Sequence record: MN871453.1
DNA length: 64,000 bases
Strand: one strand, 5' to 3'
In this document: piece by piece, positions 33,310 through 62,079 of the stretch
Numbering within the stretch: the stretch's first letter is position 1
How the letters are laid out: each line of letters begins with the position of its first letter
Notes under the pieces: generated by a model
Seen by the model: only the letters and a program-made list of their open reading frames with translations
Database searches by the model: none
Told to the model about the DNA's origin: nothing
Program-made: the position numbers and the translations under genes

Positions 33310-35379
33310 TTAAGCGGTTTCGTAATCAGTAATCTGACGACTGGTGTAAATGAACCGGTAAGGGTTAGGTTTGCTGTACTGTGCTACCGCACCGATCGGC
33401 GTATTGTAGAGATGAATCTCGCCGCTTCCATACGTTTGGAAGCTTGACTTCACGCCGTTGTCGTAACTACAGCTGTAGAAGTAAGACGCCCCTCTACCGT
33501 AAACGTTAGAACCTACCGTGTCTTTCCCGACGACATACAATGCACCTTTAATGCTGTCGGTGCTTTGGTTGCCGCTGGCGATCGTTTCGAGGTGAGCCAC
33601 GAAGGTATTCAGTCCGTACTCTTCGATAGGGTAACCGTCTACATTTCGGTAAGTCGATTTGAATCGAATCCCGGTTACACCCGGTCCCACTATTGACCCG
33701 CGTTTTTGTCCATTACCCGAACCGAAGTGATTCTCAGATACGCAACTGACTTCGAGGAACGTACCTTGCACCCCCAACGGAATTGTCTGACGGTCACTGC
33801 CGTGATAGGTACCGTAAGTCCCGCCGTTACTGAAATGGCAATCTTGAGAGAAGACCTCAGCCCCGTAGTTGTTCAGACACGCCGTTGAACAGGTTCCGGT
33901 AACCTCCACGCCCTTCAACCATAAAGACGGTTTCGCGTTGATCGCCACAGACTCAGCGCCCAAACCAATGTCGGTGTCAGAGACTTTTACATTGGAGACG
34001 TAAATCGTACTGTTCCCAGTGAAATTCAGCCCCGTGTTCTTCACGACAACTTTAACGTTACTGTCTGGCTTACGACTGTTCGACGTCTGGACAATGATCG
34101 CGGTGGACGTCACGCAGTAGCTTCCTACTGTGGCCACTACCGCAGCAGGGCCGTCTACCTCCACTAAGCGTTTAGGTAACCCGTTACTGTCTAACGTACC
34201 GTAGTCAAAGACACCGGCGATGTTTAGACCCGTTGCTAAATATTGATAGACAACATTAGAGTCGGAATAAAGCGACCAGTTAGTGATCCCCAGATCCCCT
34301 GTAAAGGTCGGTGCGGTGTCACCGGTGCCATAGATACCGATCTTACGGTCATTCACTGTACGTTGAACGAAGAACGGTTTAGAGCCCTTCACGACGATAC
34401 TGGTGGCAATGGGCGATTTATCAATTGCAGCGTTAATCGTTTTCAGGGGTTTAGCTTCACTCCCGTCATTCCCGTCTGCACCGTTATCAGAGTCAACGTA
34501 GTAGACCACCCCATACGGGAAGTACCATTCGCTCAGATCAAAATCGGTTGAGAATCGCATCAGTCCCTGTGCTAACGCGCCCTCGTAAGGGAAGACCGCA
34601 GCGAGTGGATCAAAGACCGCAGGAAGTTTAGGAACCACCGGCAAACAGTTATTTGCACTGTCGTAACTGGTCTCGTAAGAAGGTCCGGTCAGTTCCAGTA
34701 ATTGCCCAGCACGGAAACGCGACACCGTATTACCTGATTGTAGCGAACTTTGAGTCAACGACAACGATCCGTCATTCCCTAAAATAATCCCAGTATTCGC
34801 GGCAGTCGGTAAGAAACTCCCTTGTTTCCCAACCACAAAGTTTTCGCCGTTAATTCGGCTCTTCCCAGAGAGCGTAAAGGTTTTACCGTCTGACTGATAA
34901 AGTTGATACGGGGTGCGGAGCCAATCGCGAATCGTGGTTTCTTGACCGAAATAAACTTCGAGTGTCCCGATGTACATCAATGAAGTAGCAACGGTTTTCA
35001 GTGTAAAGACACCGATTGTGGTCGTCAACGCAGTGGGAATGAAGACTTCCTGTTTGATATCGGTCATGTCCAGCTGTAGGCCGTACAGCGTATTCAGACG
35101 GGTAACGATATCTTCGGTCGTGAATATTCCGGCAGTAGACATGAACACCACGGGGTCGGTCAGGACTTTATTGAGATTGACCCGGTTATAATCAAAGACT
35201 GCTGAATCACGGTAGTCACCTGCATCGGTCGCTACCGCGGTGATACGCGTGTTAAAATTCCCGGTCGTCAGGGCAGTGAGGTTGATGAAATCCAAATCGC
35301 TTTCTTTAAAAAAGGCGTCGTACTGCGTGTTCAGCTGACGAACCAGAAGCGCTTTACTTTTTAACGAGAAATCTGTCAT
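33310..35379 (-). CDS. virion protein: phiKZ-type N-terminal domain + right-handed beta-helix (putative depolymerase)
   Basis: YNRVNL...LNTLYGLQLDMTD N-domain; YYVDSDNGADGNDGSEAKPLKTINAAI. Confidence 0.7.
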   Translation of the reverse strand: MTDFSLKSKALLVRQLNTQYDAFFKESDLDFINLTALTTGNFNTRITAVATDAGDYRDSAVFDYNRVNLNKVLTDPVVFMSTAGIFTTEDIVTRLNTLYGLQLDMTDIKQEVFIPTALTTTIGVFTLKTVATSLMYIGTLEVYFGQETTIRDWLRTPYQLYQSDGKTFTLSGKSRINGENFVVGKQGSFLPTAANTGIILGNDGSLSLTQSSLQSGNTVSRFRAGQLLELTGPSYETSYDSANNCLPVVPKLPAVFDPLAAVFPYEGALAQGLMRFSTDFDLSEWYFPYGVVYYVDSDNGADGNDGSEAKPLKTINAAIDKSPIATSIVVKGSKPFFVQRTVNDRKIGIYGTGDTAPTFTGDLGITNWSLYSDSNVVYQYLATGLNIAGVFDYGTLDSNGLPKRLVEVDGPAAVVATVGSYCVTSTAIIVQTSNSRKPDSNVKVVVKNTGLNFTGNSTIYVSNVKVSDTDIGLGAESVAINAKPSLWLKGVEVTGTCSTACLNNYGAEVFSQDCHFSNGGTYGTYHGSDRQTIPLGVQGTFLEVSCVSENHFGSGNGQKRGSIVGPGVTGIRFKSTYRNVDGYPIEEYGLNTFVAHLETIASGNQSTDSIKGALYVVGKDTVGSNVYGRGASYFYSCSYDNGVKSSFQTYGSGEIHLYNTPIGAVAQYSKPNPYRFIYTSRQITDYETA

Positions 35380-35395
35380 TTTAAATTCGCCCCAG

Positions 35396-37438
35396 TTAAG
35401 CGGTATAAATGAATTGATACGGGGTCAGAAGCTGCGTGGCCGGTTTAGTGCCAATGTCGGTATCGAACAGGGCGATTTTCCCTACTCCGTTTGGAATGAA
35501 CGAGAACGCCGAGTTATCCCCTTTACAACTCCAGTACTGAGCCGATGCAGCGGTCGTCGCATTCGCACCGGTGGTAAAGTGCGCCAGATTACTCAACGTG
35601 TTCGTCACGTTATTGGACTGGCAAGCGATATTCACCGAGAACGTTCCTTCACCGGAGTCTTTGACGTGAGAACCGTCACAATGGTTGTATACGGAGTTCA
35701 GACGCAGGATTGTCCCGTACGCAGAAAGACCGGAGGCCGCAGAGGTATGGTTACTATCAAAACCGCAGTAGCTGACCGTTGCTCTATTCTCCACGATCCA
35801 ATACTTACTGTTCATCGCAGGTAATACACGGTCACTGTTGTAACTGAATCCGCCACTGAAACCAAATTGTGCAACACAGTCTTGATGTGCAACGTTATAA
35901 CCGTAGCTTCCGAAGGATGGACCCTTGAACGTCCACCCGAACCGACAGGCGTTCATGTACAGATATCCGTAGGTTCTCGGTGTGGTCATGTCCGCGATAA
36001 AGCCGTTGTAGGAGAGATCAAAATTACATTTCTCCATGAACACGTTACCCGCATCGGCGACTGACCCTGAGAGCGTTTTTGCAATCAGGTAAACATTACT
36101 GTCTGGTTTGCGGCTATCGGTTAATCGAACGTAGACCCGATTATTGGTGTTGTCGATGTAATAAGAGTGCGGGGTGTTCGCACAGTCAGCAATCGAGGTC
36201 TTAGCAGTCATTCTCCCGTACCCGGCATCACTGTATACCGTTTTGTCTACCACGGCAGCAATGTCACTGATTTTACTGTACCAAGTGTTGGCATCGTACC
36301 CTGACCAATCGGTACTTTGACGGGTGGAGGTAAAGATAGGGTTAACGTCCCCGTAACCAATAATGTCAACTGTACGTTGGCGGATAGTCTGTGTCCAGCC
36401 AGAATCGGCGTCGTAGTAAAGATCCGCGTAACCTTTTACGCGAATAACTCTGGCAGCAGGTAATCTGTTTATCGCACGACGGAAGGTTTTGAACGCGGTC
36501 GCTGCGGTCGAACCGTCATTGGTATCGGAACCGTCTTTAATATCAACGAAGACCACTGTACCTGTACCGGCACGTTTACTGGTGACGTCGAAGCCCAAAG
36601 AGTAGGTCAACGTCCCTTCATTCAAGGACGCTGTCAATCCTAACGTTTCAGGGATCACTGCAAGTTGAGACGGTAACATCGGCACTTTAGGAAGCAAGTT
36701 ACCCGTGGCGTCGTAAGACGTTTCACCGTTGACTCCTAAGGTCTCCAGTAGACGACCATTGCGGAAGCGTCCTATCAACGTGTTCTTGCTGTTTGGGTGA
36801 TAGTCGATTGCCGGGATAATATTCCCAGTAGGAGAAAGATAAAGCGCAGTTAACCCGGAACGTTGCGAAATAGTACGGCTGACGTCAACGATGTCTTTCC
36901 CAGCCAGTTTCCAGTGACCGCCTAAAAAGCTGAGGGTGTTATAGTCACTTCCCACGGTAAACTGTAGCGCATTGAAATATTGGTAAACCGCCTCTTGTTT
37001 GCCGAGATAGATAGTTACGCTACCGGTGTACACGAGGTGATTATCTGCCACGCTGACTGTGATCTTTCTGACGCCAGTGGCAATGTCATCTGGGCGATAC
37101 GGGCCGTCTACGAGATCAGTGGTAGTTAGGGCGAGTTGGTATTTCTCGTTCAGGTACGGAATTAAATCAACGATACGAGAAAGGGTATAGTCTTCCAGTT
37201 GACAGTAGGGTCGGGCCAATAGCGTTTTAAAGCTCAGGCGATTATACTGTAATGTTACACCGAGCGATTGCAGGGACGAGCCGTTAGTGACGTTAATCGT
37301 CGTATTCAAACCGTTAACAACGGTAGTGTTAACAGCGGGTGTACCTAACGAGATTGACGAAGTCGTGTACATTGTCCCGTTTGCTTCGTTAATCAGGTCA
37401 ACGGCAATCTGTTTTGGGGTCTGTTTTAAATCAACCAT
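35396..37438 (-). CDS. virion protein, paralog of 33310-35379
   Basis: Start MVDLKQTP; YNRLSF...LNEKYQLALTTTD; VFVDIKDGSDTNDGSTAATAFKTFRRAI. Confidence 0.7.
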   Translation of the reverse strand: MVDLKQTPKQIAVDLINEANGTMYTTSSISLGTPAVNTTVVNGLNTTINVTNGSSLQSLGVTLQYNRLSFKTLLARPYCQLEDYTLSRIVDLIPYLNEKYQLALTTTDLVDGPYRPDDIATGVRKITVSVADNHLVYTGSVTIYLGKQEAVYQYFNALQFTVGSDYNTLSFLGGHWKLAGKDIVDVSRTISQRSGLTALYLSPTGNIIPAIDYHPNSKNTLIGRFRNGRLLETLGVNGETSYDATGNLLPKVPMLPSQLAVIPETLGLTASLNEGTLTYSLGFDVTSKRAGTGTVVFVDIKDGSDTNDGSTAATAFKTFRRAINRLPAARVIRVKGYADLYYDADSGWTQTIRQRTVDIIGYGDVNPIFTSTRQSTDWSGYDANTWYSKISDIAAVVDKTVYSDAGYGRMTAKTSIADCANTPHSYYIDNTNNRVYVRLTDSRKPDSNVYLIAKTLSGSVADAGNVFMEKCNFDLSYNGFIADMTTPRTYGYLYMNACRFGWTFKGPSFGSYGYNVAHQDCVAQFGFSGGFSYNSDRVLPAMNSKYWIVENRATVSYCGFDSNHTSAASGLSAYGTILRLNSVYNHCDGSHVKDSGEGTFSVNIACQSNNVTNTLSNLAHFTTGANATTAASAQYWSCKGDNSAFSFIPNGVGKIALFDTDIGTKPATQLLTPYQFIYTA

Positions 37439-37479
37439 TTTCAATTCATCCCTCATTATACGGGGCGGTTAAAGTACGA

Positions 37480-37490
37480 GTCATAGAAAG
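37480..37490 (-). promoter_or_regulatory. late promoter (CTTTCTATGAC)
   Basis: TATG core upstream of virion gene. Confidence 0.65.
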
Positions 37491-37528
37491 GTTTTGGGAC
37501 AAAAAAGAAAAGCGCGAGAAGGAGACAA

Positions 37529-37560
37529 CAGGAGAAGAGAGCGTCTGCTCTCTTCTCCTG
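37529..37560 (-). terminator. hairpin terminator
   Basis: 14-bp stem caggagaagagagc/gctctcttctcctg. Confidence 0.7.
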
Positions 37561-37564
37561 GGAA

Positions 37565-38298: not shown

Positions 38299-38320
38299 CT
38301 TGTCTTCCTTATTGGTCGTT

Positions 38321-38632: not shown

Positions 38633-38640
38633 AAGAACAC

Positions 38641-38673
38641 AGAAAGGAAAGGGGTTAGTCCCCTTTCCTTTCT
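38641..38673. terminator. bidirectional terminator
   Basis: 14-bp stem between convergent genes. Confidence 0.75.
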
Positions 38674-38917
38674 AGTCTATATTGTTTTTCAGGATGTCTT
38701 CGGCAGGGTAGAAATGATCTTCTACGATTTTACCGAATTGATGGGCGCCAGTGAGTGCGTTTTCTACGGGGGTGATGTAAGCGGCTTTATTGTCCCACGG
38801 CGGGAGAAGCTCTGAGAGCAACAGTGCGGCTTCGTTTAATAAAGCTAGGTTCTCGTCAGGGACGAATGATATTGTCTCTTGTAGGCTCTCTAAGAGCGCT
38901 ATACGGGGAGTAAACAT
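38672..38917 (-). CDS. hypothetical protein
   Basis: Convergent on the same hairpin; AAGGG RBS. Confidence 0.6.
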   Translation of the reverse strand: MFTPRIALLESLQETISFVPDENLALLNEAALLLSELLPPWDNKAAYITPVENALTGAHQFGKIVEDHFYPAEDILKNNID

Positions 38918-38935
38918 AGTTGACCCTTAAAGGTG

Positions 38936-39087: not shown

Positions 39088-40815
39088 TTAAGTAATTTTC
39101 ATCCACCAAATATCATTAATAAAATTCCCATCGATATCGGTGGTGGTAGTATTAGATCCCGACCCTTTCAAAACAGTACCTGGCATAGTTTTAATCTTTC
39201 TTGCACTTGCAACGGACACTGGTGGTTGAGATGGAATATAACCGATTTTAGGATCGGTAATATTAACATTGGTGCACGTTCCTGCTAATTGCACGGCGGC
39301 AGCGGCGGCTGTAATGTCAGCTGCTGACCATACTTGTGAAAAAGCAACAACGTTAGTTAAAACAGTGGCTGCTTTACTGTAATTGACCGTGTCTGTTATA
39401 GGTTTAAGAATATTTAAACCGTCATTATATCTGGCGTAATAGACCGAGTCCTGAATAACTAATCGAGGAACTTCACCCTGTAACAACGGGAAATTATTAT
39501 TACTAGCGAGATATTTACTGGTTCGAGAAACGGTGTCAATAAAGACGCAGTTCCTGACCACATTGTTGTAATTAATGTTACCAGAACGAATGTTGGTGCA
39601 ATAGTCGTAACCGGAAGAAGGATATGGTAATCGTTGAATACCGTCATTGAAAAAGAACGAAAACTCAACAACATTGTTACCTTGGCCATTCCTTCGATCG
39701 TAGAACCATTGCGCCTGTGTATAAGTGCCGGAATAGGGGGCGTACGCCGCTCGTGCTCCACCTTGTACACTTGTAGAAGAATTGCCCATAAATAGAATCG
39801 AGGCGCCATTGTTGAAGCCAATGATATTTCTTGCCACCGAATCCCACGTACAGTAATCAAAATCAATGATTTCATTATCGGTAACCGAAGGGTGCATACC
39901 ACCGCCGAAAATGTTTTCAATCATGATTCGATTACAACGCCATGTCCAAAACCCCGCATCGGCATATAGCGTTTCAGTGTTCTCTAACGCGTTATCCCAT
40001 CGGTATTTTGAATACGTAATATTCCGCATGACTGACTGATATTTGTCCACAACGTAGGCGGAGTTTAAAGACTCCACGCCAGCAAACTGACAGCCTCCTT
40101 TTGAGATTCCTGTCATCTCAATATTCTCTACTTTGACCCCGCGAGAATAATACGTCCCTTTAGAGTTGTCAGTAATATCATCTGCTTTCCAATGGTTCCC
40201 CACGATGTTAATGGATCTCGCTACATTGAAAAATGAAGAATTTCTGACACCAAAAACATTCGCCCTATTTGTGGCGGCACCATCTAAACGTATATTGACG
40301 GCGGAATCATAGTCTTTATGATTTCCGCTTCTGCCAATCGGATCGCTAATAAATTTACAATTATCAATCCATACGTCGACATCAGTTTCCACAGTTACCG
40401 GTGGCAATTCAAACCAAATAAAACAGCTACTGTTATTATCGACCGAAACAAGATTGTTTCGGGCATAAAACTCTATTCCGCTGACGGTAACGCTTTGTAC
40501 CTTACGTGCGGTCAAATGCATTGCACGATAGCTATACCCATCGAGCGCAGTGGCAGCTTTAAAATAGTCTGTGTTAATCCATTTTGGTTTTGGTCCAGTC
40601 CCATAACTTGTAATATAAGACATGGTCCCCGTTGTGTTGTACAAAGAGGTTAAGCCAAAATTAACGTTCTCATAAATAGTTGTCCCTGCTTTTAGTGCAA
40701 TAGTACAAGGGTGACTGAAACCTTGTGCAATCAATGCAGAAAACGTTTTAAATGGTGAGTCTTTTGTCCCCGTACCGTTCACTGATACGGTAGGATCAAT
40801 GTAATAATAGTTCAT
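39088..40815 (-). CDS. beta-helix protein without an anchor domain (putative depolymerase)
   Basis: Begins YYYIDPTVSVNGTGTKDSPFKTF; Asn-ladder beta-helix repeats. Confidence 0.7.
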   Translation of the reverse strand: MNYYYIDPTVSVNGTGTKDSPFKTFSALIAQGFSHPCTIALKAGTTIYENVNFGLTSLYNTTGTMSYITSYGTGPKPKWINTDYFKAATALDGYSYRAMHLTARKVQSVTVSGIEFYARNNLVSVDNNSSCFIWFELPPVTVETDVDVWIDNCKFISDPIGRSGNHKDYDSAVNIRLDGAATNRANVFGVRNSSFFNVARSINIVGNHWKADDITDNSKGTYYSRGVKVENIEMTGISKGGCQFAGVESLNSAYVVDKYQSVMRNITYSKYRWDNALENTETLYADAGFWTWRCNRIMIENIFGGGMHPSVTDNEIIDFDYCTWDSVARNIIGFNNGASILFMGNSSTSVQGGARAAYAPYSGTYTQAQWFYDRRNGQGNNVVEFSFFFNDGIQRLPYPSSGYDYCTNIRSGNINYNNVVRNCVFIDTVSRTSKYLASNNNFPLLQGEVPRLVIQDSVYYARYNDGLNILKPITDTVNYSKAATVLTNVVAFSQVWSAADITAAAAAVQLAGTCTNVNITDPKIGYIPSQPPVSVASARKIKTMPGTVLKGSGSNTTTTDIDGNFINDIWWMKIT

Positions 40816-40824: not shown

Positions 40825-42648
40825 TTAATTTGCGAGTTTTACCAACACGTCTATCCAAACTGCCGGGCCCAGATCTACTGGGGAGCTACTCAACGCTTCT
40901 GTTACCGTGATCGCGTTAGTTGTTGTATTCAGTGTGGCAGTAGTAAGGACTTGCCTAACGCTAAACGCAAATGTATGTGCAGTTGTATCAGTTGCACCAA
41001 TAACGTATCGATAACTGTTAGCATTATTTGGTATCTGAGGTAGCCTTATCTGCCAAGGCATATCTGTCGCAAGATCAGCACCTGTGATCGTGAAATTAAG
41101 ACTCGGTATTGTGCATGTTAATGAATCAACACCACTTTCAAAATTGGTGGCGTAACAAAAAGAAGAAACGAATTTCTTAAAGGGAGCGGCATTGATAACC
41201 GAATCAGCCGGGTGGTTGTAATGACAACGCAATACAGCATAACCCTCTGGTACGTCAAAACTCGAACCATCATTGAGTAACACGCGACGATAGTTTGACC
41301 CTGTATAGGCGGTGTTCGCCCAAATAATCCCTGCAGGGGTCGAACCACTGAGCGACGTCAATTGTGACCCGCCCATGTATTTATTCCAATTCCATGTGAT
41401 CAAGTTTGCATTTCCGGAGTTCACGCAAGTAGAACTCAAATAAGTGGAATGCGCCGGAGTTCTTAGGTAGAAATTCACCGTTCCGGTTGTTGTATCTTGA
41501 ACCAAACCAATAACCGGTTGGAGGGCGTTTTTTACATCGCTATTATCCAACATCTTACCCGAACCAATCCCTGTAAAACGAACGTACTTATTAATGTTGT
41601 ATTGAGTAAACGCGGTAACGACATCTGGTAAATTGACATCGAGAACATATGTCAAAACATTGCTATTTGTCGCGTTCCCAATATTAATTAAGCAGGAGAA
41701 ACGTGCGCCGATAAGATTGGATGGGTTTACAATAGTTGCGAAATTAATGAAGTTAGCATTAGCACTGTCTACGGTGAAGTAGGTGTCGTAAGAATTGGCC
41801 AGACTCCGTCCAATAGAATCAAGCTGAGCTAATTCTCTGACAGCTGTGCCGTTCGCCCAACTCCAACGATAACGCCCAGCGTCAGTGAAAGGGACTAACC
41901 CTGTTTGGAGCGGAGAAACAGTAAAGATTCTTGGGAGATTTGTGGTTTTATCATAACTCCACATGATCGCTGGGGAGGTTTCATCATCCGCTTGGCCGTC
42001 TACAGGGAATCGCGCAATGACGTCTTGATAAGGACCTCTCCAGTAGCCTGTGCCTTCAGCAAAAGGTACATGAATGTTTCTTGCAGTTCGGTGTCCGTCA
42101 ACGGTAGCTGAGGTTTTCAGTCTTCCGCGGTTATCAATGAGAATGGTACCCAGATTTTTCTTTCCGCCGAAGTTAATGCCAGCTACCGCTTGAATATCTT
42201 CAGGGGCCGGGTTGACGTCGTATTGACCTTTTACGCTCATTTGATCTTCAACGGAAATATCGTCAGAAGCAGAGGGCCCGTTTCCGTCAGTTGTTCCTTT
42301 ATTATCAATTTCGCCCTTAAATTCCGCTAACAAATTTTCAACGACGCTCAAAGCCTGATCAATTACCCCAAGATCTCTCCATGGGCCAACGTTAAAACTT
42401 CCTGTTGTCGTTACCAAGTTTAAAGTTCCATCTTGGTTTCTGGTGAAACTTTGCAACGTTCCCGTAGCTGAAACTGTTTCGAAACAGTTGTTTGTATTAA
42501 AATCAAAAAGCACGTTTACATTGGAAAGGTCGACATTTGCCTCGAGTACCGCTATTTGATTTGTTTCTAATCCCAGTAGAGTACAAAGGTTACGAAGAAT
42601 GATCTCTTTTGTTGTACTTCCGTTGGGTTGGACTAAACGATTTAACAT
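40825..42648 (-). CDS. tail fibre/RBP with CBA120 TSP1/TSP3-like N-terminal docking domain
   Basis: MLNRLVQPNGST...L.L......NVDLS....LFD N-terminus; no GA.GDG..DD signature. Confidence 0.7.
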   Translation of the reverse strand: MLNRLVQPNGSTTKEIILRNLCTLLGLETNQIAVLEANVDLSNVNVLFDFNTNNCFETVSATGTLQSFTRNQDGTLNLVTTTGSFNVGPWRDLGVIDQALSVVENLLAEFKGEIDNKGTTDGNGPSASDDISVEDQMSVKGQYDVNPAPEDIQAVAGINFGGKKNLGTILIDNRGRLKTSATVDGHRTARNIHVPFAEGTGYWRGPYQDVIARFPVDGQADDETSPAIMWSYDKTTNLPRIFTVSPLQTGLVPFTDAGRYRWSWANGTAVRELAQLDSIGRSLANSYDTYFTVDSANANFINFATIVNPSNLIGARFSCLINIGNATNSNVLTYVLDVNLPDVVTAFTQYNINKYVRFTGIGSGKMLDNSDVKNALQPVIGLVQDTTTGTVNFYLRTPAHSTYLSSTCVNSGNANLITWNWNKYMGGSQLTSLSGSTPAGIIWANTAYTGSNYRRVLLNDGSSFDVPEGYAVLRCHYNHPADSVINAAPFKKFVSSFCYATNFESGVDSLTCTIPSLNFTITGADLATDMPWQIRLPQIPNNANSYRYVIGATDTTAHTFAFSVRQVLTTATLNTTTNAITVTEALSSSPVDLGPAVWIDVLVKLAN

Positions 42649-45432: not shown

Positions 45433-45456
45433 GAGTAGGGCCGATCGGCCCTACTC
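45433..45456 (-). terminator. hairpin terminator
   Basis: gagtagggcc/ggccctactc. Confidence 0.7.
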
Positions 45457-45480: not shown

Positions 45481-45675
45481 TCAACTACCGGAATCGTCTT
45501 CGCTAGTCCTGTCTTCTAAAAGAAAAGAACCATCCAGACCCTTTTCCGATAAGAACCCAAGTGCGGCTTCCTGATAGTTTTCTACTTCTTCAAAGAAAAC
45601 GATAGCCTCCCCCAAATCAATTCTGGAAAGAAAATAAACGTTCTCTCGCACAGTATCTTTGTAGATATAAATCAT
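45481..45675 (-). CDS. 64-aa acidic protein coupled to tailspike 45675-47660
   Basis: Start MIYIYKD overlaps upstream stop (TGATG). Confidence 0.55.
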   Translation of the reverse strand: MIYIYKDTVRENVYFLSRIDLGEAIVFFEEVENYQEAALGFLSEKGLDGSFLLEDRTSEDDSGS

Positions 45676-53047: not shown

Positions 53048-54772
53048 TTAATTTTGTTCGTACCACTTACCATTAAAATAGTTAAAAGTAACAATTTCAT
53101 TTAAAGTAAGAGTGCGAGCTGCGGATCCTTTCAAAACGATGGTGCTGTTATTGGCTAACGTAACGTTAGTATTCGCTGCATGAACCTTGATCTCTTGGGT
53201 ATTGACGCCCCCAGTAAAGTTAGTTATTGTAGTAGCGGAACTCATGTTAAGGTACAAATAAGAAATACCATCAACGGCTAAAGTGGTGCCCGATGTAAAG
53301 ACCATGGATTTTTTAGACAAGTTAAAAGGGCTTCCTAAATAATCATTGTTCTTATATTTTTGAGTGCCTACTGTGGCCTGTACGTTTGGAGCGATCCAGT
53401 TATTCCATTGACTGTTAGATGAAGTTGTATCGTTAATCCCGTACCTTGGCGTAGTGCCATCTTGAGAATAAACGCCAGCGCCGACAAAAGTATTCAAAAT
53501 ACCGGAGACCGAGAAGCCATCATGAGTGTTAGCAGCGGCGGAACCGATGCCAATTGCAGTAGGGTTACTGAAAGTGTTCGTTGAGCCAGTAACAACGAAA
53601 CCATCACCCATACATCTATCTGCACGCGCCCCTGAAAAACGAGACCGCGTGCCATCGACGTAAATCCCGATTTCACCGAACTCACCAATAGTATCAGTGA
53701 TGAAATGATTACTACCGCCGATCCTGAGAGCAACAGCCAGTTTATTACCAGCTATAGTAGTAAAACCACTTTGTCCATTAGCTTCGATTCTGAATAAGAA
53801 ATGATCTGTCCCTAATATATCAACTGCCCCTTTCAATGTAGTGAAATTTGCTCTGTCATACATTGTGTTTAAAACAATAATGTCCTGGATTACACAAGCT
53901 ATAGAGCTAGAGAGGAGGCGTATACCTTGATTCTTTGTACTGTTAACGCCTACATGACTAATTACACAATTGCCTGAGGCTACTTCTATTCCACAGTCCA
54001 AATTAGCCGAACCAATAATAGTTATATTTCTGATGGCTGAGCTATAACCATTAACTACAATACCGCGACCAGAATGTGTACACTTAATCGCAGAAGGATC
54101 ATTCTGTGAATAATTACGCATTCCGTTGATACCAGAAAGATGGTGTCCAGAAGGAATTATAATTTCTTTGCCGGAGATCCATAACCCTTCAGAAATTTCA
54201 CAATGGGTCGCATCAGAAAGAACTTCATTGATTAAATCACCAAAATCATCGGTACTAACCCTTAACTTAATATTATTGTACTTATTTTTTGTAACTGCGC
54301 GAGCTAGTTCAAATTTAGAACCATTACGCATGTCCGATAAAGTAGGTAAATAAAGTCCACCTACGTAATCCGCAAAACGTAAACTATCAACATCGGATGA
54401 TAAGGTAGTTGGTAACGTTGCAATTGAACGCACTTGTCTACTCGTCGGCAACCTGACTTGTTCATTGTCATAACCCAGAATAGGATTAGCCACACCACTA
54501 TTATTTTGGTATTGCAACACCCACAATTTCGCCGCGCTTTCGTACACGAAGAAAACGTCCCCTGACGTTGTTCCATTCAGGCCCGCATCCACAGACAGGA
54601 AAGCATTCTCGAAACCCAGCGTTTGACGGAGGTCGTTAACTTTAGTGGATTTAGTGAAAGGAACCCCTGCACTGGTTTTGGCGTTAATCGGGACGACGTC
54701 ATTCTCTTTGATGACGCCTGCGTCACCGAGTTCAGAAATTTTGATTCCGATAGAATCTGAAGTCTTAGGCAT
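53048..54772 (-). CDS. tailspike/depolymerase with KISEL anchor
   Basis: KISEL...LGFENAF...FFVYES; beta-helix; C-terminal TLTLNEIVTFNYFNGKWYE domain. Confidence 0.85.
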   Translation of the reverse strand: MPKTSDSIGIKISELGDAGVIKENDVVPINAKTSAGVPFTKSTKVNDLRQTLGFENAFLSVDAGLNGTTSGDVFFVYESAAKLWVLQYQNNSGVANPILGYDNEQVRLPTSRQVRSIATLPTTLSSDVDSLRFADYVGGLYLPTLSDMRNGSKFELARAVTKNKYNNIKLRVSTDDFGDLINEVLSDATHCEISEGLWISGKEIIIPSGHHLSGINGMRNYSQNDPSAIKCTHSGRGIVVNGYSSAIRNITIIGSANLDCGIEVASGNCVISHVGVNSTKNQGIRLLSSSIACVIQDIIVLNTMYDRANFTTLKGAVDILGTDHFLFRIEANGQSGFTTIAGNKLAVALRIGGSNHFITDTIGEFGEIGIYVDGTRSRFSGARADRCMGDGFVVTGSTNTFSNPTAIGIGSAAANTHDGFSVSGILNTFVGAGVYSQDGTTPRYGINDTTSSNSQWNNWIAPNVQATVGTQKYKNNDYLGSPFNLSKKSMVFTSGTTLAVDGISYLYLNMSSATTITNFTGGVNTQEIKVHAANTNVTLANNSTIVLKGSAARTLTLNEIVTFNYFNGKWYEQN

Positions 54773-54850: not shown

Positions 54851-57037
54851 TTATAAAGGACCGCAATCGAAAATTTTATACAGGTGTATAGTTTCACCTG
54901 CTCCTAATCCACTGAGATCCAAACGTAATTGAACTTTATTCATTTGCTGCCCATTTCGGTGATAAGCCAAATAAGGGGTATCATTAAACTTCGTAGGTGT
55001 TGCTGAATTACTGAGTACTATTGTCGCCCCTAAAACAGAAGCAGACTTACTCGATGTTTTATACATCCCCAAGGAATCTTTACTTTTAAGTATAATGCAC
55101 CCGGTAGAACCTGTAATTGTTCTGGGGTTGGATGAACTCCCTCCTATAATGGAACATTGAATGGAGTTGAGTACACCACTTTGAACCGTCCTATCAGCGT
55201 AAAGTTTAAACTCGCAATATGACCCGATACCATAACCCGATTGTTTGGTAATTGCTATCGAAGGATAAGTTACCCCGTCGACTGTAATTGTAGAAGTTAC
55301 GGCAGATAACCTCGCTGTAGTATGGGGATCAGTGTTAGTCTCGGTATCAAGACCTCTAACCTCGAACTCTACTTGACTATATGGATGCGCTAATCCGCTA
55401 TCCTGGAGATTGTAAATTGTATTAGGGTAGTTTGTGTTATTTATTGCACTAACATTATTAGCCGTGTCTTTGATGATAATACGTGAACGTTCTAGTCCGT
55501 AGTTCGCCCAGGCGTCAATACCCGCTCGGTTAACTACCACTCCGTCAAGTAGAAAAACAGATGTCCCGGTATTATAAAAGAAGACAGGTACCGTCCCATA
55601 ATTTCCGCCGGACATTGGTCTGATTACACCGCCGTTTATTTCTACAATTGTATTTCCGCCGCACCGGAACATATTGTTAACGATAGAACTAGCATTTCCC
55701 CATTCAAAGTGACAATTCGTAAAGAACAGAAGTTGAGTGGTGGACATATCGAAGGGGTAAATTGTCCCTAAGTTACCATAACCGCCAAAGTAATCAAATG
55801 AACATTCTTTGAAGCGAATCTCCCATTGAGAGTCAGTGCCATTGAATTGAAGATTATAGACATTCATGTCAAAAACACAATCTTCAAAACTTAAGTTTTC
55901 GCCTCTATCGGTGAGTGTTGTTCCTGCAACTACCTTTTCATCAGAAACCGCTGCATAACAGTGCAAAAACCTACACTTTCTAAACGTTAACAAGTAACTG
56001 TGACTCGAAAATACGATAGCTGTGTGGAAATGCTTGATCAGTACACTTTCAGCGTCAAAACCGTTTAAAGAAGTATCGGTTTTAAAGTATAAACCATGAA
56101 TCTTAGCAAGCAGGGTACTCCCTATATTACCGTTGAATGCCGGTCCAATTATTTCTACGCCCGACATTTTACCTACACGATAAAATACTTCAGTATTGAC
56201 TCTTCTACTGGTCGTTAACGTAACAGCGTATAAATTAGAACCCGTTGGGATTTGAGAGGCAGTTATTTTACTAAAATCTAGTAGCATGTTCTCGATGTTA
56301 AAGTAGCTGAGATCTACTGTGATCCCCTCACTTAAAACATAGGTTCTTCCCTGGCCATCAATCCGAGAAACACGGCTGTTAGGAAAAGATTTAAAATAGT
56401 TATAAAGGTTTTTAAATGCTTGGGTGTCATCGGTAGTACCGTCACCATATGCTCCAAAGTCATAAAGAGAAAAGTCATTTTTGTTTGCCCTTTCCCAATA
56501 AAACCCAGGACCAACAATAACAATACCTGTATATTCAGTTGCTGTCCCTATTCTTCCAACGAATTCACCACCGCCATAAAGGCTCGGCGCCCTAAACCCA
56601 CGAACTTTTACTTTCTGACCATCGATTAAAACAGGTAATGTTCGTAAATCTTCGATTGAGGGGACTTCCTTTATTAAGGAATACCCATAATAGGTAAACC
56701 ATTGCTGCATGAAGGAAAGTGTGGAATATACTAACTTATTTCCGTTAACGTCAACAATCGCCTCGGCAACGCCGTTACGATTGTAATACGGGTTAACTGA
56801 TAGTTTTTGATTATCTGTATAAACGTAGAAGATTTGATTGGCGGTAGTTGCAGCCAATCCGGCAACGGTAGTACTATATGCATTTTTGAAATTGAGTATA
56901 TCTCTTAAGTCGGAGATACTCATTGCAGCGGAGAGGTTCTCATTATTATTCAACTGGGAAATGAACACTACATCCGAATCATTGACCGGGGTACTGGGTC
57001 TGGAAAGTTCAGAAAGTTTAACGTAAATTTCTGACAT
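54851..57037 (-). CDS. tailspike/depolymerase with KISEL-type anchor
   Basis: KLSEL...FKNAY...FYVYTD; SLYDFGAYGDGTTDDT. Confidence 0.88.
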   Translation of the reverse strand: MSEIYVKLSELSRPSTPVNDSDVVFISQLNNNENLSAAMSISDLRDILNFKNAYSTTVAGLAATTANQIFYVYTDNQKLSVNPYYNRNGVAEAIVDVNGNKLVYSTLSFMQQWFTYYGYSLIKEVPSIEDLRTLPVLIDGQKVKVRGFRAPSLYGGGEFVGRIGTATEYTGIVIVGPGFYWERANKNDFSLYDFGAYGDGTTDDTQAFKNLYNYFKSFPNSRVSRIDGQGRTYVLSEGITVDLSYFNIENMLLDFSKITASQIPTGSNLYAVTLTTSRRVNTEVFYRVGKMSGVEIIGPAFNGNIGSTLLAKIHGLYFKTDTSLNGFDAESVLIKHFHTAIVFSSHSYLLTFRKCRFLHCYAAVSDEKVVAGTTLTDRGENLSFEDCVFDMNVYNLQFNGTDSQWEIRFKECSFDYFGGYGNLGTIYPFDMSTTQLLFFTNCHFEWGNASSIVNNMFRCGGNTIVEINGGVIRPMSGGNYGTVPVFFYNTGTSVFLLDGVVVNRAGIDAWANYGLERSRIIIKDTANNVSAINNTNYPNTIYNLQDSGLAHPYSQVEFEVRGLDTETNTDPHTTARLSAVTSTITVDGVTYPSIAITKQSGYGIGSYCEFKLYADRTVQSGVLNSIQCSIIGGSSSNPRTITGSTGCIILKSKDSLGMYKTSSKSASVLGATIVLSNSATPTKFNDTPYLAYHRNGQQMNKVQLRLDLSGLGAGETIHLYKIFDCGPL

Positions 57038-57116: not shown

Positions 57117-57143
57117 CATTTTTGTTTACGCTGGAGTTGTGAA

Positions 57144-59189
57144 ATGACCGATATCATTGCATTGAAAATCTCTGAACTATCACCCAGTTCTAATCCGTCA
57201 GAGAATGCGTTTCTTCCGCTATCAGAAGCGAATGCAAGCGGCTCTGAAAAAGTCAGTATTAGTACCCTCAGAGAAACGTTAGGTTTTGAGAACGCGTATG
57301 GGACGATTGCTGCTGCGCTCACTGCAACCACAGAGGGGAATGTTTTCTTTGTTTACGAAGACAGTACACGGGACTATGTCTTGGGATATGTAAACCAAGG
57401 GAACGGAACCTATTCTGCATTAATGTCAGACAGTACGACACAAGTTCGCTACGCGACGAATGCGCATATTGTCAACTCTTTATTCATGTTACAAGGAGTA
57501 GAAAGTTTCGATGCGTTACGTACCCTCAAACCGTGGTACGAAGGACAACGTGTCACGTTGAAGAGTTACTACAAAGACGGGGTTACGGGTGCTGGTATCT
57601 TCATTGCGCGTTTAGGAGTAAATGCAGATGACAACGGCACGATTGCCGCGGGGAACGGATTCTACTGGCAACGGATTATTACAGATCAGTTGTCTTTTGA
57701 GGACTTTGGTGCAGTCGGGGGCGGCGTACTGGACGATACTAGTAATATTCAAAAAGCGGTCAACTACTGTGCCAAAAATGGCATTGCACTAACGTGTTTA
57801 GGGAAAGTATACGCGGTCAGTACCGTAAATTTCCCAACCGATTTAGTGATCGATATGCGTAATGCAGTACTTTTGTCGCTGCCCTCTGTTACGACGGGTT
57901 ATACCTTAACAATCAGCGGCTATTTGTCACCTGCGGCTAATCCAGGGAAATTTGATAATATTCGCGTTCAGCGTACCTTAATTAATACTCATCAACCCGA
58001 CACTAACAGTGTCGTAGACGGCGTGTCATTTGGTGTCGATGCGCACAATATTTCCTTCTACAATCTTAAGGTCTCTGGGTTTAGGGACGGGGTTTGTTTT
58101 AACGGGAAGAGTGCTTACCTCATTCGTTTATACAGCCCAATCATCGGACAATGTTGGCGCCGAGGGATGGCCTTTTATGCGAATACTGATTCTAATGAGA
58201 ACGTGACTATTTACGGTGGCGTGATTGCAGATTGTTGTAATTTTACTTTCGACGGTACCGGGCTCTACTTATCAGGGAGTGCCTCGAGTATCGATGTCAG
58301 GTTCTTTGGAACCAGTTTTGATTATTGCGACATCTCAGTTGATATTTATCAGTCTAACGTCGAGCTCCACGGTTGTCACTTGGAAAACAATAACAACAAC
58401 CCTCATATTCGACTTTCGTACACCTCAACCAAAAACCAACCCTATCTGATCATGAAAGGGGGAACAATGGGCGGCGGACCGAACGCGAACTCGTGGAGCG
58501 GTATTCCGATAGAAAATAGTACGGGTCGCCCTTACCTCGTCTTCATTACTAACACTGGCGGTGCCCACGTAGATATTGATGGAACTGACACCAGTAAATA
58601 CATGACAGGAGTCAGGAGAACTACCGAGATCGTAGGTGTAGAAGGGGATAACTACCAGTTGATCGGGACCTTAAGGGTGAGGAACAAAATGACCTCTGGA
58701 AACATGGATAACGCCAGCCGCCCCATGCGACCTTGTAGTGCTCTTAACGTGATTCTGATCAACCAGTATCAAACTGCCGCATGGACACCGAGTTACACTA
58801 ACGCAGACCTAACTTATACGATTGATACTACGAATTACTCTAACCCTAATTCACCACACTCACGAAAAATTACACAAGGAAGCGTACGTAACGTCTCTTA
58901 CTGGCAGGACGTGACACTGCGCGGCGGAGATATCTTCCACGCGGAGGCCGAAATCAAAATTACTTCGTTGACGGCTGGTTACGTCGCACTTCGAGTGGAT
59001 TTTTACGACTCTGCCGGGAACGTAATACAATCGTCAATCAAATCTGTATCTGCGGTGACGACCGATTGGAATAACGTGTGGGTCTGGTTACGTGCGCCAA
59101 ACGGTACAGTCAAGGCAAAAGTTCAAGAGTACTTAAACGGCTTTGTTGGAACAGCATATTTCACCAATGAACACGTTTGGATTTCTTAA
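57144..59189 (+). CDS. tailspike/depolymerase with KISEL anchor
   Basis: KISEL...LGFENAY...FFVYED; SFEDFGAVGGGVLDDT; C-terminal CBM-like domain. Confidence 0.88.
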   Translation: MTDIIALKISELSPSSNPSENAFLPLSEANASGSEKVSISTLRETLGFENAYGTIAAALTATTEGNVFFVYEDSTRDYVLGYVNQGNGTYSALMSDSTTQVRYATNAHIVNSLFMLQGVESFDALRTLKPWYEGQRVTLKSYYKDGVTGAGIFIARLGVNADDNGTIAAGNGFYWQRIITDQLSFEDFGAVGGGVLDDTSNIQKAVNYCAKNGIALTCLGKVYAVSTVNFPTDLVIDMRNAVLLSLPSVTTGYTLTISGYLSPAANPGKFDNIRVQRTLINTHQPDTNSVVDGVSFGVDAHNISFYNLKVSGFRDGVCFNGKSAYLIRLYSPIIGQCWRRGMAFYANTDSNENVTIYGGVIADCCNFTFDGTGLYLSGSASSIDVRFFGTSFDYCDISVDIYQSNVELHGCHLENNNNNPHIRLSYTSTKNQPYLIMKGGTMGGGPNANSWSGIPIENSTGRPYLVFITNTGGAHVDIDGTDTSKYMTGVRRTTEIVGVEGDNYQLIGTLRVRNKMTSGNMDNASRPMRPCSALNVILINQYQTAAWTPSYTNADLTYTIDTTNYSNPNSPHSRKITQGSVRNVSYWQDVTLRGGDIFHAEAEIKITSLTAGYVALRVDFYDSAGNVIQSSIKSVSAVTTDWNNVWVWLRAPNGTVKAKVQEYLNGFVGTAYFTNEHVWIS

Positions 59190-59202
59190 GAAGGAACTCA
59201 CT

Positions 59203-59424
59203 ATGTTTCAAGTAGGCGACACCGTTCGCATCCTTTCTTGTCAAACTCGAGAAGACTTAGTTGGGAAAGAAACGACCATCAGTGCACTGGACGCTAAACT
59301 GAAAGATTTGGCTTGGGCAGATATCTACGGAATGGATCAATATATTTCGGTGGTCATCGATACCGATGCACGGTTTATTGCGGCTCAATTGGAACTCGTA
59401 GCCAGTGACATTGAAGGCTCTTAA
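59203..59424 (+). CDS. small KOW/SH3-like protein
   Basis: Start MFQVGDTVRI with AAGGA RBS. Confidence 0.6.
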   Translation: MFQVGDTVRILSCQTREDLVGKETTISALDAKLKDLAWADIYGMDQYISVVIDTDARFIAAQLELVASDIEGS

Positions 59425-59432
59425 GTTATAGG

Positions 59433-59460
59433 CAATGAGGGGACCTAAGTCCCCTCATTG
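59433..59460 (+). terminator. hairpin terminator
   Basis: caatgaggggac/gtcccctcattg. Confidence 0.7.
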
Positions 59461-59464
59461 CCTT

Positions 59465-59476
59465 GTTTCGTATGAC
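59465..59476 (+). promoter_or_regulatory. late promoter (GTTTCGTATGAC)
   Basis: Identical 12-mer to 57105-57116. Confidence 0.7.
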
Positions 59477-59500
59477 AATCCTCTTTCAGGAATAAAAAAC

Positions 59501-61459
59501 ATGTCTAATGAAACACAGAAAATTAGCGAGTTGCTCAATACGTCCATCATTTCAGAGAACACTATTCTTCCCGTAGTTGCTGCTGAAGGTGAGACCAATT
59601 CCATCGATATTATCACTTTACGCTCGGCGTTGTTATTTGATAAAGCGTTTGAGACTAACGCAGCGGGTAATGCAGCGACTAGTAAAAACGATTCTTATTT
59701 TGTTTATACCGATGCCACCAAAACAGCCGTATTGGGCTGGATGAACCAGGGCGGGGATTCTTATTCGCCTCTCCTCGATATTAACGGTGCACAAATCCGT
59801 TTTATTGCGGGTCAAACTATCCGAGGGCTGGATTATTTCACAAATGGGGTTAACTCATTTGCGGATCTGAGAACACTGGCTCCGTTGTATTCTGGGCAGC
59901 GCATTAAATTAAAGGCTTGGGCGGCGGGAGAAAAGACAGGCGGTGGTGAATTTATTGCTGTCTTCGGAACAGCGACCGACGACGGCGGGATAATAGCCGC
60001 GGGAAACGGGTATTACTGGGAAAGAGTGATCAATGGCGGGCTAAATCCAGAGATGTTCGGGGCTATCGGGAACGGTGTAGTTGACGACAGTAATAGTTTA
60101 TCTAAATTTCTACTGGCTTTAGCAAATAGAGCCAGATATTTAACGTCAATAACATTTGTTCCGGCTATAGGTTATCTCAACGGTATCTACAGAATAACAA
60201 AAACTATTACTGTAGATGGCGGTAAAGTAAGATTAACTACCAACACTGTTGGTTGCATCTTTTGTGACCCTACAGGGACTTACGAAAGCACCGGATGTAT
60301 TAAAGTAACCAATAATTACCTTAACTCTGCTTTTGTTGGACAGTACGCAGCACTATTTGAAAATATTTCTTTCGTCAGTACAGGAAGAACACTCACCGCA
60401 ATTTACGCTGTGAGGGGAGATGCTGTGAGCGGTAATAACGGTGCGTGTCTTCATAACGTTTTTAAATGTTCGTTTAAAGGCTTCAGTAAAATTTTTACAC
60501 ATGGACCTGGCGGTTGGGGTTGGAACTGGGTAGGTTGTCAATTTTCCGATAGTACCAATTTGATGGTAATTGAGGATCAAGACGACACTTATGAAAGGCA
60601 TAGTTTTGATGGATGTATTTTCCAAAACGGCGGGGTTGCGTTTACAATAAATAACCCCGATGGGAAAGTCTATTGGAAAAATGGTTCTATGGACTACTGC
60701 ACCGGCGCAGCTACAATTACTGCCGGTTTCATAGAACTTAATGGTCATTTCGAGTGGACAGCTAGAACCGTAGATTTCATTACACTTTTATCGAGTAATG
60801 CGGCTGCTTCTATCTCGGGTGCAATGTTTATTCGTAACAATACTTCTGGTTCTACCTATTACGTCATTAATCAATACCAAGATAAGCAAGTAAAAGTAGA
60901 TAATTTGGTCGTTATATCTGACGGTAATTACATTGCCAATGGAGTACTCTCAAATAGAGAGTTGTTAAAGGGAACGATTTTTGCGCAGAACGACGCGTCT
61001 AAATCTGTGCTCTATCACTCAGCCGATGAAAACTTAATGTCGGGAACGACGTCTTACTCTCAAGTAACCTTGACTAATACTACTCAGTTCTCTTATTCAA
61101 TAACTGACGGTTCTTTGGCGATAGCTTGTTCAGCAGGCGGGCAAAGTGGCTTTCTCTACCTTGACGTCCCAGTGACTAATAAAAAGTTTTATGCTTACAA
61201 ATTGGTTGCGAGTAACACATCTACTGGTTCGGTATTCTTGGAGAAAACCGTACTGAATACAAATAAAGATACGATAAGAACCGACACAAGTTCTGGTACT
61301 ACTAGTTGGGTGGCGGGTTCTAATTCGGTAGCAGGAGGTACAGTGACGTTATTGTCATTACCTCCGGCGGCGGCTTTTATACGAATTAAATTTAATCTTT
61401 CGTCTATGACCACGGGAAGTACGTTCACTATTAGTTCATTGAAAACTTTTACTTTTTAA
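59501..61459 (+). CDS. tailspike/depolymerase with KISEL anchor
   Basis: Start MSNETQKISEL; YFVYTD; NPEMFGAIGNGVVDDS. Confidence 0.88.
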   Translation: MSNETQKISELLNTSIISENTILPVVAAEGETNSIDIITLRSALLFDKAFETNAAGNAATSKNDSYFVYTDATKTAVLGWMNQGGDSYSPLLDINGAQIRFIAGQTIRGLDYFTNGVNSFADLRTLAPLYSGQRIKLKAWAAGEKTGGGEFIAVFGTATDDGGIIAAGNGYYWERVINGGLNPEMFGAIGNGVVDDSNSLSKFLLALANRARYLTSITFVPAIGYLNGIYRITKTITVDGGKVRLTTNTVGCIFCDPTGTYESTGCIKVTNNYLNSAFVGQYAALFENISFVSTGRTLTAIYAVRGDAVSGNNGACLHNVFKCSFKGFSKIFTHGPGGWGWNWVGCQFSDSTNLMVIEDQDDTYERHSFDGCIFQNGGVAFTINNPDGKVYWKNGSMDYCTGAATITAGFIELNGHFEWTARTVDFITLLSSNAAASISGAMFIRNNTSGSTYYVINQYQDKQVKVDNLVVISDGNYIANGVLSNRELLKGTIFAQNDASKSVLYHSADENLMSGTTSYSQVTLTNTTQFSYSITDGSLAIACSAGGQSGFLYLDVPVTNKKFYAYKLVASNTSTGSVFLEKTVLNTNKDTIRTDTSSGTTSWVAGSNSVAGGTVTLLSLPPAAAFIRIKFNLSSMTTGSTFTISSLKTFTF

Positions 61460-61474
61460 ACTATTAACAAACAC

Positions 61475-61506
61475 AGACAGAGAGAGCCGTTTGGCTCTCT
61501 CTGTCT
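61475..61506. terminator. bidirectional terminator
   Basis: 14-bp stem between convergent 59501 and 61513 genes. Confidence 0.75.
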
Positions 61507-61512
61507 CTTCTA

Positions 61513-62079
61513 TTAACTTTCGGTTTGTTCAACCAGAATGAATTTGCTGTCTTCGGTGTTAATCGCTTTACCAGATTCGGTAAGCAGAGAACCACGAGGA
61601 ATCTTACTCCCGCCACTACAAGTGACGTCAAGGTTACCTGACCAGACGTGGCTGTTATAAGTCGTACCGGCTTTGGTCTGGATCGTCACCACTGCGGTTT
61701 CCCCGGACGGAATGAACGGCAGGTAATCGTCCGCATTCGCGACGTCTTCGAGGTCGATATAAAGAGAATATTTCGTTTTGATCAGCGACAACAGATCAGC
61801 TACAGTACTTGCTGTTTCCGGCAGGACTAACGTAGGACCAACCGACGCCATCAATTTGTTCAGTTCGATACGGGTGTAAGTAAAGGTCTTACTCCCGGTT
61901 ACCGGAGAACGACCTGTAACGAGCACGGAGACACGATCTTCTGTACCCGGTACCGTAGAACCAGTGATGTTACCAAAGCTCAGGTAGCTGGCGTTGAGCG
62001 GCGTAGTGAGGTTATTCTGCTGACTGATCAGATCAGCGAGAATCTCGTATTTGGGACGACCGAATAAATCGACGTACAT
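61513..62079 (-). CDS. short virion protein with phiKZ-type N-domain only (candidate fibre adaptor)
   Basis: Same domain as 33310/35396 (YTRIELNKL...IKTKYSLYIDLED); C-terminal LLTESG..INTED. Confidence 0.65.
   Translation of the reverse strand: MYVDLFGRPKYEILADLISQQNNLTTPLNASYLSFGNITGSTVPGTEDRVSVLVTGRSPVTGSKTFTYTRIELNKLMASVGPTLVLPETASTVADLLSLIKTKYSLYIDLEDVANADDYLPFIPSGETAVVTIQTKAGTTYNSHVWSGNLDVTCSGGSKIPRGSLLTESGKAINTEDSKFILVEQTES

Follow-up and report, generated by a model that had tools for sequence, protein, structure and literature searches.

Capsule type limits nearly all Klebsiella phages, and phages that carry many depolymerases are therefore sought both for therapy and as sources of enzymes. 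In the jumbo phage phiKp24 (vB_KpM_FBKp24, NC_061421), cryo-electron microscopy revealed branched fibres, and 14 putative fibres were listed, with gp306 named the primary fibre on account of its long gp10-like N-terminus (Ouyang et al., PMC9700779). According to DepoCatalog, 11 of the 14 predicted phiKp24 enzymes are active, on different capsule types, with gp303 typed as K64/KL178, gp304 as K19 and gp310 as K61 (PMC13385381). A QPxG motif has been published as the common N-terminus of RaK2 gp526 and gp529 and of TSP1 and TSP3 of CBA120-like phages (PMC3622015). RaK2 gp526 itself, a fibre protein of the virion, lacks a depolymerase domain, and a WceF-like sandwich domain was reported for it (PMC10253068). 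Here we describe a cluster of receptor-binding protein (RBP) genes at positions 33310-62079 of the Klebsiella phage record MN871453.1. ‘The window’ denotes the whole stretch of DNA analysed, 64,000 nucleotides long. Going by the gene content, domain homologies, synteny and mosaicism, all of them observed directly, as is the strict linkage of one gene pair, the stretch very probably holds the genes for most of the machinery with which a Klebsiella jumbo myophage of the phiKp24 lineage recognises its host. We also propose, more tentatively, that two of its genes form the halves of a split tailspike.

Positions 33310-55000 are 100% identical to GenBank MN871453.1 at the same coordinates. This record, of phage KpZh_LPS_45 (host Klebsiella pneumoniae; 299,008 bp), is without annotation, and the window is its first 64 kb. 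The phage belongs to Siatvirus, the sister genus of that of phiKp24 (Maaswegvirus). Over the compared 21.7 kb (33310-55000), KpSz_1 and KpZh_1 are identical to the window; KpLz-2_45 (Siatvirus Lz245, NC_061418) covers 73% of it at 97% identity and phiKp24 30% at 86% identity. The titles of MN871453.1 and of seven sister records read ‘Serratia phage’, and the records bear the flag UNVERIFIED or UNVERIFIED_ORG, with K. pneumoniae given as host and no annotation.

A preliminary description of this DNA had counted twelve large RBP-like genes with divergent bodies, six on a KISEL anchor, three on a QPxG/TSP1-like anchor, two with a phiKZ-type N-domain and one an anchor-less beta-helix, and this census was recovered in full. 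Twelve open reading frames (ORFs) of 574-974 residues (aa) lie within 33310-61459, ten on the minus and two on the plus strand, all with intact frames, and a 188-aa ORF closes the range. The KISEL group comprises the 892-, 974-, 574-, 728-, 681- and 674-aa proteins, which have an N-terminal domain of about 100 aa in common. All pairs of this domain are 28-42% identical (blastp E values from 1e-7 to 1e-44), their alignment contains the conserved blocks KISEL, FENAY and FxVY, and all six proteins match phrog_27731. The QPxG motif stands at the start of the 607-, 755- and 661-aa proteins. The first two have in common an 80-aa domain behind the motif (E 5e-5), and the 661-aa protein retains the first ~13 residues with the motif, followed directly by the neck. 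In a Foldseek search the N-domain of the 607-aa model matched the head domains of CBA120 TSP1 and TSP3 (4ojl, 5w6f) with probability 1.0; this match and the published motif together justify the label ‘TSP1-like’. The Pfam family DUF7941 (PF25613; cut-off 27 bits), which is present in phiKZ too, was found at about residues 1-155 of the 689- and 686-aa proteins (68.2 and 67.4 bits) and makes up the whole 188-aa protein (57.4 bits); these matches cover the first ~150 of the 276 profile positions only. The remaining, 575-aa protein was modelled as a beta-helix from residue 1. Three more DUF7941 proteins lie outside the window, at 112282-115744 (-) of MN871453.1, one of them with a full-length profile match of 266 bits.

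The bodies behind these anchors show weak paralogy in three pairs (689/686, 27%; 661/755, 28%; 728/681, 27%) and are otherwise mutually unrelated. Two more spikes are encoded outside the window. A search of the whole record with phrog_27731 found the first, at 264008-266242 (+), which is a seventh KISEL-headed spike of 744 aa. The second, at 282414-284990 (-), has 858 aa and a fourth kind of N-terminus, which matches podovirus-type tail-spike PHROGs. Both sit in the slots of phiKp24 gp168 and gp196, and their first ~210 residues are conserved with phiKp24 (75% and 53%), with differing bodies. With twelve genes in the window and two elsewhere, the phage therefore has 14 RBP genes in all, as has phiKp24.

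The gene order of the locus (dUTPase, two DUF7941-headed proteins, small ORFs, spikes, 188-aa DUF7941 protein) was compared with the annotated regions of phiKp24, KpLz-2_45, MJ359 and LPKP23, and is syntenic with phiKp24 gp294-gp313. It thus corresponds to the phiKp24 branched-fibre cluster, and the architecture class is a known one, as the preliminary description had said. The twelve window proteins were then compared slot by slot with six relatives. The first two genes are conserved throughout, at 96-99% in the Siatvirus-like relatives and 73-76% to phiKp24. These encode the 689-aa protein (33310-35379, -), which has a beta-helix-type body and matches phrog_30606 over its full length, and its paralogue of 686 aa (35396-37456, -), with a hydrolase/tail-fibre-type body matching phrog_16653 (hydrolase) and phrog_32409 (tail fibre); they are orthologues of phiKp24 gp294 and gp295. 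At the other end, the 188-aa protein (61513-62079, -; phrog_2935) forms a conserved right border, and its counterparts in relatives are annotated as virion structural protein. In the other slots the anchors are kept (59-94% identity) and the bodies are either more than 85% identical or unrelated.

Three spikes have full orthologues in phiKp24. The 661-aa spike (45675-47660, -), with the QPxG peptide as its sole anchor, is 96.2% identical to gp303 over the full length; the 755-aa spike (47735-50002, -; phrog_9823), with a QPxG/TSP1-like head, is 94.3% identical to gp304; and the 681-aa spike (57144-59189, +), a KISEL protein matching an exopolysaccharide (EPS) depolymerase family (phrog_4250), is 85.6% identical to gp310. 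Because of these identities (96%, 94% and 86%), their targets are probably the same, namely K64/KL178, K19 and K61. The possibility that every protein is aimed at one polysaccharide, which the preliminary description had itself raised, was checked by orthology, and these three different types were the result.

The remaining KISEL proteins combine a conserved anchor with an exchanged body. The largest, which we call the hub, is a fibre of 951 aa (50084-52939, -; listed as a 974-aa frame to 53008) with two tandem gp10/XD-like domains at ~131-303, a neck at 344-447 and a body from ~440. In a sequence search of the PDB, residues 121-303 of the 974-aa frame matched 9d80 (E 1e-27), 7rfo and 6w4q, the last two being N-terminal fragments of CBA120 spikes, and the protein matched 16 PHROG tail families. 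It occupies the gp306 slot; its N-terminal 425 aa (974-aa frame) are 71% identical to gp306 and its body is different. Likewise, the 892-aa spike (42695-45373, -; phrog_27731, phrog_12242), with one gp10-like domain (~113-187) and a body from ~236, occupies the gp301 slot, with 78% identity to gp301 over the N-terminal 234 aa and a different body. The 728-aa spike (54851-57037, -) has a neck that matches WceF and Depo32. The 574-aa spike (53048-54772, -) has a body without a close relative outside Siatvirus, placed with pectate-lyase-like beta-helices in the ESM Atlas (score 0.95). Finally, the 652-aa spike (59501-61459, +; listed as a 674-aa frame from 59435) has a body in common with KpLz-2_45 and Centimanus. 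The PDB sequence search returned no matches for the 892-, 574- and 686-aa proteins.

Within the compared phage group, the hub and 728-aa bodies occur only in KpZh_LPS_45, KpSz_1 and KpZh_1, and the 892-, 574- and 674-aa bodies are common only to some Siatvirus isolates. Outside the group, the nearest relatives of the hub body are in KpGz_1 (67%) and in podoviruses (62-65%), and that of the 728-aa body is in the Raoultella jumbo phage VB_ZK_P1 (58%), followed by matches of at most 30%. Spikes of KX1, KPR2 and Bullseye (two groups of hosts, K. quasipneumoniae ATCC 700603 and E. coli) come nearest to the 892-aa body, at 44-46% identity. The 674-aa body is 94% identical to Centimanus and 61% to RCIP0023, and the 574-aa body reaches at most 30%. 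No typed close relative of these remaining bodies was found among the compared records. The isolation hosts given in podovirus names allowed K-type guesses that we treat as mere leads: K61PH164C1 resembles the hub body (65%) and K48PH164C1 the 674-aa body (48%), each phage having two RBPs. The suggestion in the preliminary description that the enzymes may cover new specificities is thus reasonable for the hub, 728- and 574-aa bodies (nearest 67%, 58% and ~30%, none typed).

Taking virion assembly, enzymatic activities and K-type targets from what is known of the relatives, we would picture the apparatus as follows. The hub would link the assembly to the baseplate and provide sites for docking, through its KISEL N-domain and its two gp10/XD-like domains, a role that the phiKp24 study gives to the orthologous gp306 (PMC9700779), and the 892-aa spike would contribute a third such domain. 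The other spikes would dock via the KISEL domain, via the TSP1/TSP3-like QPxG head or peptide, or via DUF7941, each bearing its own polysaccharide-degrading beta-helix body, and a single virion could therefore open several capsule types. Most genes or gene pairs have a terminator hairpin of their own behind them. Recombination at the junction between anchor and body would replace bodies slot by slot, and host range would evolve in this way. Two observations weigh against this picture. Only three recognisable XD-like docking domains face 13 clients, and the 689- and 686-aa proteins are conserved, not swapped, while their phiKp24 orthologues lie outside the 11 active enzymes. A pairing of the three XD-like domains with three clients of the TSP1-like type is a lead at most, as the head domain is present in two clients only and ten more proteins would be left with no site to dock on.

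The second of these observations leads to an alternative for these two proteins that we regard as a serious possibility, short of probable. They may be conserved baseplate or virion enzymes with a constant task, built on a phiKZ-type structural domain, and not capsule-type-specific binders. Their similarity to phiKp24 extends over the full length while the neighbouring spikes are swapped, and DUF7941 is found in stand-alone virion structural proteins here, at 112-115 kb and in phiKZ. Their bodies, however, match hydrolase and tail-fibre PHROGs, and the authors of the phiKp24 study modelled the orthologues as beta-helical depolymerase-like fibres (PMC9700779). The absence of gp294 and gp295 from the list of active enzymes may also reflect nothing but failed expression.

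The preliminary description had taken the locus as an array of tailspike, fibre and beta-helix genes. Among these, the 607-aa protein (40825-42648, -; phrog_20024) is indicated both by its AlphaFold2 (AF2) model and by Foldseek to be a non-enzymatic fibre without a beta-helix. The model (predicted local distance difference test, pLDDT, 77) has a head domain at ~10-90, a neck helix at 93-114 and then beta-sandwich domains. The protein has no Pfam match and its Foldseek search gave no match to any beta-helix enzyme; it did match the WceF sandwich domain (6tgf, probability 0.96). The similarity to RaK2 gp526 is weak and partial, at 36.4% over 99 residues (tblastn E 7e-11). We call this gp526-like fibre the carrier. 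It is followed by the gene for the anchor-less 575-aa protein (39088-40815, -), and the two form a two-gene cassette. At the junction are a TAA stop, the ribosome-binding site GAGG and a second stop, TAG, with nine bases between the genes and no terminator; TAA, GAGG and the ATG of the second gene all fit into 12 bases. Stop-codon read-through fusing the two proteins was considered and rejected, as both stops, TAA and TAG, stand in frame between them; of eight related pairs, three have their genes in different frames.

The AF2 model of the 575-aa protein (pLDDT 85.9) is a right-handed beta-helix from the first residue. Its closest solved folds are GH136 lacto-N-biosidases, with a VIA Z of 26.7-27.4 over 472-479 residues at a root-mean-square deviation of 3.3-3.4 (LnbX, 5gqc: Z 27.4 over 479 residues), and a Foldseek E value of 4e-11; generic beta-helix enzymes gave Z of 22-23 with ~330 residues aligned. 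By sequence, no Pfam match was obtained and a profile of 17 homologues found no GH136 chain in the PDB; the ESM Atlas neighbours are generic beta-helix clusters. With no link at the sequence level, we therefore do not file the protein as GH136. Three residues, D313, D318 and D320, are invariant in 22 members of the family, and D313 and D320 have the same seven-residue spacing as the catalytic pair D568 and D575 of ErLnb136, a comparison made by spacing alone. GH136 enzymes need a partner from an adjacent gene or a fused domain (PMC7335108).

A tblastn survey of 50,697 phage records showed how closely the two genes are linked. The 575-aa family was found in 42 records and the carrier body in 41, and all 41 carry both. 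In every one of the 41 the carrier comes first and its partner lies next to it in the same orientation. The linkage has one exception, a Serratia phage protein of the 575-aa family that is only 24% identical. The pair-bearing records include Siatvirus, KpGz_1/KpHz_2, phiKp24 (gp312/gp313), Miami, RaK2 (gp526/gp525), Taipeivirus-type phages, KP12/Ro1/05F01, Webervirus (1513, H02, RCIP0095), LASTA/SJM3 and the Drulisvirus K15PH90. Six further contexts contain it as well: two prophages in bacterial genomes, an Ackermannviridae-like contig, cp19, a T7-like contig and a P2/Mu-like myovirus contig. In these, 9-13 bp separate the two genes, the alignment of the downstream protein starts at residue 1 in every case, and the homologous part of the upstream protein begins at 95-506, behind the host phage's own anchor. 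Altogether the pair spans at least 10 phage groups and all three tail morphologies, plus prophages: it is spread over jumbo phages, Ackermannviridae, Webervirus, Lastavirus-size siphoviruses, T7-like and KP34-like podoviruses and P2/Mu-like myoviruses. A scan of IMG/VR with the carrier alignment returned near-identical phage only. In the literature that we searched we came across neither an account of the pairing nor any Klebsiella phage enzyme with a lacto-N-biosidase-like fold.

In phiKp24 the cassette is present as a distant copy (gp312/gp313; 26-28% identity) at the other end of the locus, with the carrier on a KISEL-type anchor. Its gp312 (NC_061421 235874-239541), a gp526-like carrier, was left out of the 14 listed fibres and precedes gp313, which was counted. 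The phiKp24 proteins without shown activity are gp294, gp295 and gp313, the last being the homologue of the 575-aa protein; its inactivity fits a need for a partner, but fits many other explanations too.

We would tentatively interpret the 607- and 575-aa proteins as the two halves of a split tailspike. The first would supply anchor and non-enzymatic fibre body, acting as the lineage-specific anchor and as a docking or folding platform, and the second, probably translationally coupled, would be the anchor-less, GH136-like enzyme that rides on it; the two would act as one unit and move between phages as a two-gene module. A competing explanation, which we hold to be doubtful though worth keeping in view, places the 575-aa enzyme outside the virion and makes it a free depolymerase that diffuses after its release at lysis. 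In that case the 607-aa protein would be an independent non-enzymatic receptor binder, and the two genes would travel together through matching specificity. A soluble enzyme was indeed proposed by Latka et al. (2019) for the anchor-less 541-aa protein of phage 1513. Members of the 575-aa family lack a conserved N-terminal peptide or anchor, every one starting at the beta-helix cap, and the 49 library representatives of the carrier included none fused to the enzyme. In addition, the tandem mass spectrometry (MS/MS) table of the RaK2 virion contains gp526 (15 peptides) and not the 575-like gp525, a point that counts against the split tailspike, although a protein missing from such a table is weak negative evidence. 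On the other hand, the podovirus K15PH90 has one RBP slot, occupied by the pair, and no other RBP, so that with a free enzyme the first, capsule-dependent infection would have to proceed without any virion-borne enzyme. Within the present phage group, moreover, the pair takes an anchor slot that in other members belongs to an anchored depolymerase encoded by one gene: the QPxG slot holds such an enzyme in phiKp24 (K25) and in KluzKp13 (KL124). The absolute linkage, the gap of 9-13 bp and the ribosome-binding site in the junction also fit stoichiometric co-production.

That the array as a whole is redundant or decayed, with paralogues aimed at one polysaccharide or non-functional, is very improbable, since the weak paralogy of three body pairs is all that favours it, and the intact frames, the three orthologues with three typed targets and the bodies that are unrelated or less than 30% identical stand against it.

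Two of the listed frames are probably too long. The longest start of the 974-aa frame is a TTG that falls within the upstream gene's terminator hairpin, and the hub gene most likely starts at the ATG at 52939, giving 951 aa; GAGG lies ahead of this codon, which aligns with the starts of relatives. The 674-aa frame similarly begins inside a hairpin, and its most likely start is the ATG at 59501, giving 652 aa that begin with MSNETQKISEL, the same residues as in the expressed phiKp24 gp310 construct. The hairpins concerned, at 53048-52990 and 59430-59470, hold start codons, and the mechanical call of the next ORF comes out 22-23 codons too long. Terminators were found behind the 689-, 892-, 661- (past its small ORF), 755-, 974-, 574- and 681-aa genes. 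A scan for promoters gave as many as expected from shuffled sequence and was uninformative.

Small ORFs accompany some of the spike genes. That of 64 aa (45481-45675, -) begins with an ATG sharing one base with the 661-aa stop codon and is followed by a strong terminator (45433-45456); phiKp24 and relatives have an annotated small ORF in this place. The 73-aa ORF (59204-59425, +) lies between the 681-aa gene and its terminator, and a 222-bp ORF is annotated at this position in KpLz-2_45 and phiKp24. Among the small ORFs between the DUF7941-headed and the spike genes, a perfect GC-rich hairpin of 14-15 bp (38640-38674) reads as a terminator on either strand.

KpZh_LPS_45 is a second, differently loaded version of the phiKp24 apparatus, in a genome that is public but unannotated. 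What is new here is the slot map, three probable K types, two corrected starts and the recognition of a mobile fibre-plus-enzyme cassette. For capsule types that so far lack a known depolymerase, at least the hub, 728- and 574-aa bodies are candidates. The slot-by-slot comparison also locates the natural joints at which anchors and bodies recombine, which are needed to understand fibre modularity. If the split tailspike is real, it would explain gp526-like fibres without a known receptor or activity, and would give them a function; it would also mean that uncharacterised anchor-less enzymes such as gp313, gp525 and the 541-aa protein of phage 1513 may have to be produced together with their partner. 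Confirmation of a two-protein spike would suggest such co-expression as a route to activity in an enzyme family that has so far been silent.

Comparison with known systems places the locus closest to phiKp24 and to KpLz-2_45 with the isolates KpSz_1 and KpZh_1. With phiKp24 it has in common the borders, the gene order, the anchor families, the long N-terminus of the hub and the two extra spikes elsewhere in the genome. It differs in the bodies of the hub, of the 892-, 574-, 728- and 674-aa spikes and of both outlying spikes, in having the two-gene cassette where the first QPxG slot of phiKp24 holds the K25 depolymerase gp300, and in having twelve large genes in the cluster as against thirteen. 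KpLz-2_45 has nine of the twelve proteins in common at 96% identity or more, whereas it has other bodies in the hub, 661- and 728-aa slots, and its counterpart of the 755-aa protein reaches only 78% identity. The Escherichia phage CBA120 (Ackermannviridae; TSP1-4) resembles KpZh_LPS_45 in the gp10/XD-like docking domains of its large fibres, in client spikes with a TSP1/TSP3-type head and QPxG motif, and in the logic of a hub with docked clients. It has four such proteins as against fourteen, and the KISEL and DUF7941 anchors are without counterpart in the matched CBA120 structures.

For the cassette, three systems offer parallels. The long-tail-fibre protein gp526 of RaK2 (Alcyoneusvirus) is built like the carrier, with a TSP1-like head followed by a helix and by beta-sandwich domains and with no beta-helix, and there too the gp526-like gene is followed by a gene for an anchor-less, gp525-like beta-helix. 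The sequence similarity of gp526 to the 607-aa protein, however, is confined to ~100 residues, and the literature that we searched on gp526 treats it alone, with gp525 unmentioned. GH136 (LnbX of Bifidobacterium longum, 5gqc; ErLnb136) offers the whole-length fold of the 575-aa protein and a partner from an adjacent gene. That partner is made of alpha-helices and has no relation to the beta-rich 607-aa protein, and no sequence relationship between GH136 and the 575-aa protein is detectable; the parallel is one of analogy only and not of membership. The nearest precedent for the pair as such is the ‘group C’ RBP pair of phage 1513 (Latka et al. 2019), in which an anchored non-enzymatic RBP accompanies an anchor-less putative depolymerase, both of the same families as here. 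That study regarded the pair as something particular to one siphovirus and suggested a soluble enzyme, whereas in the present comparison the pair appears as a recurrent mobile unit.

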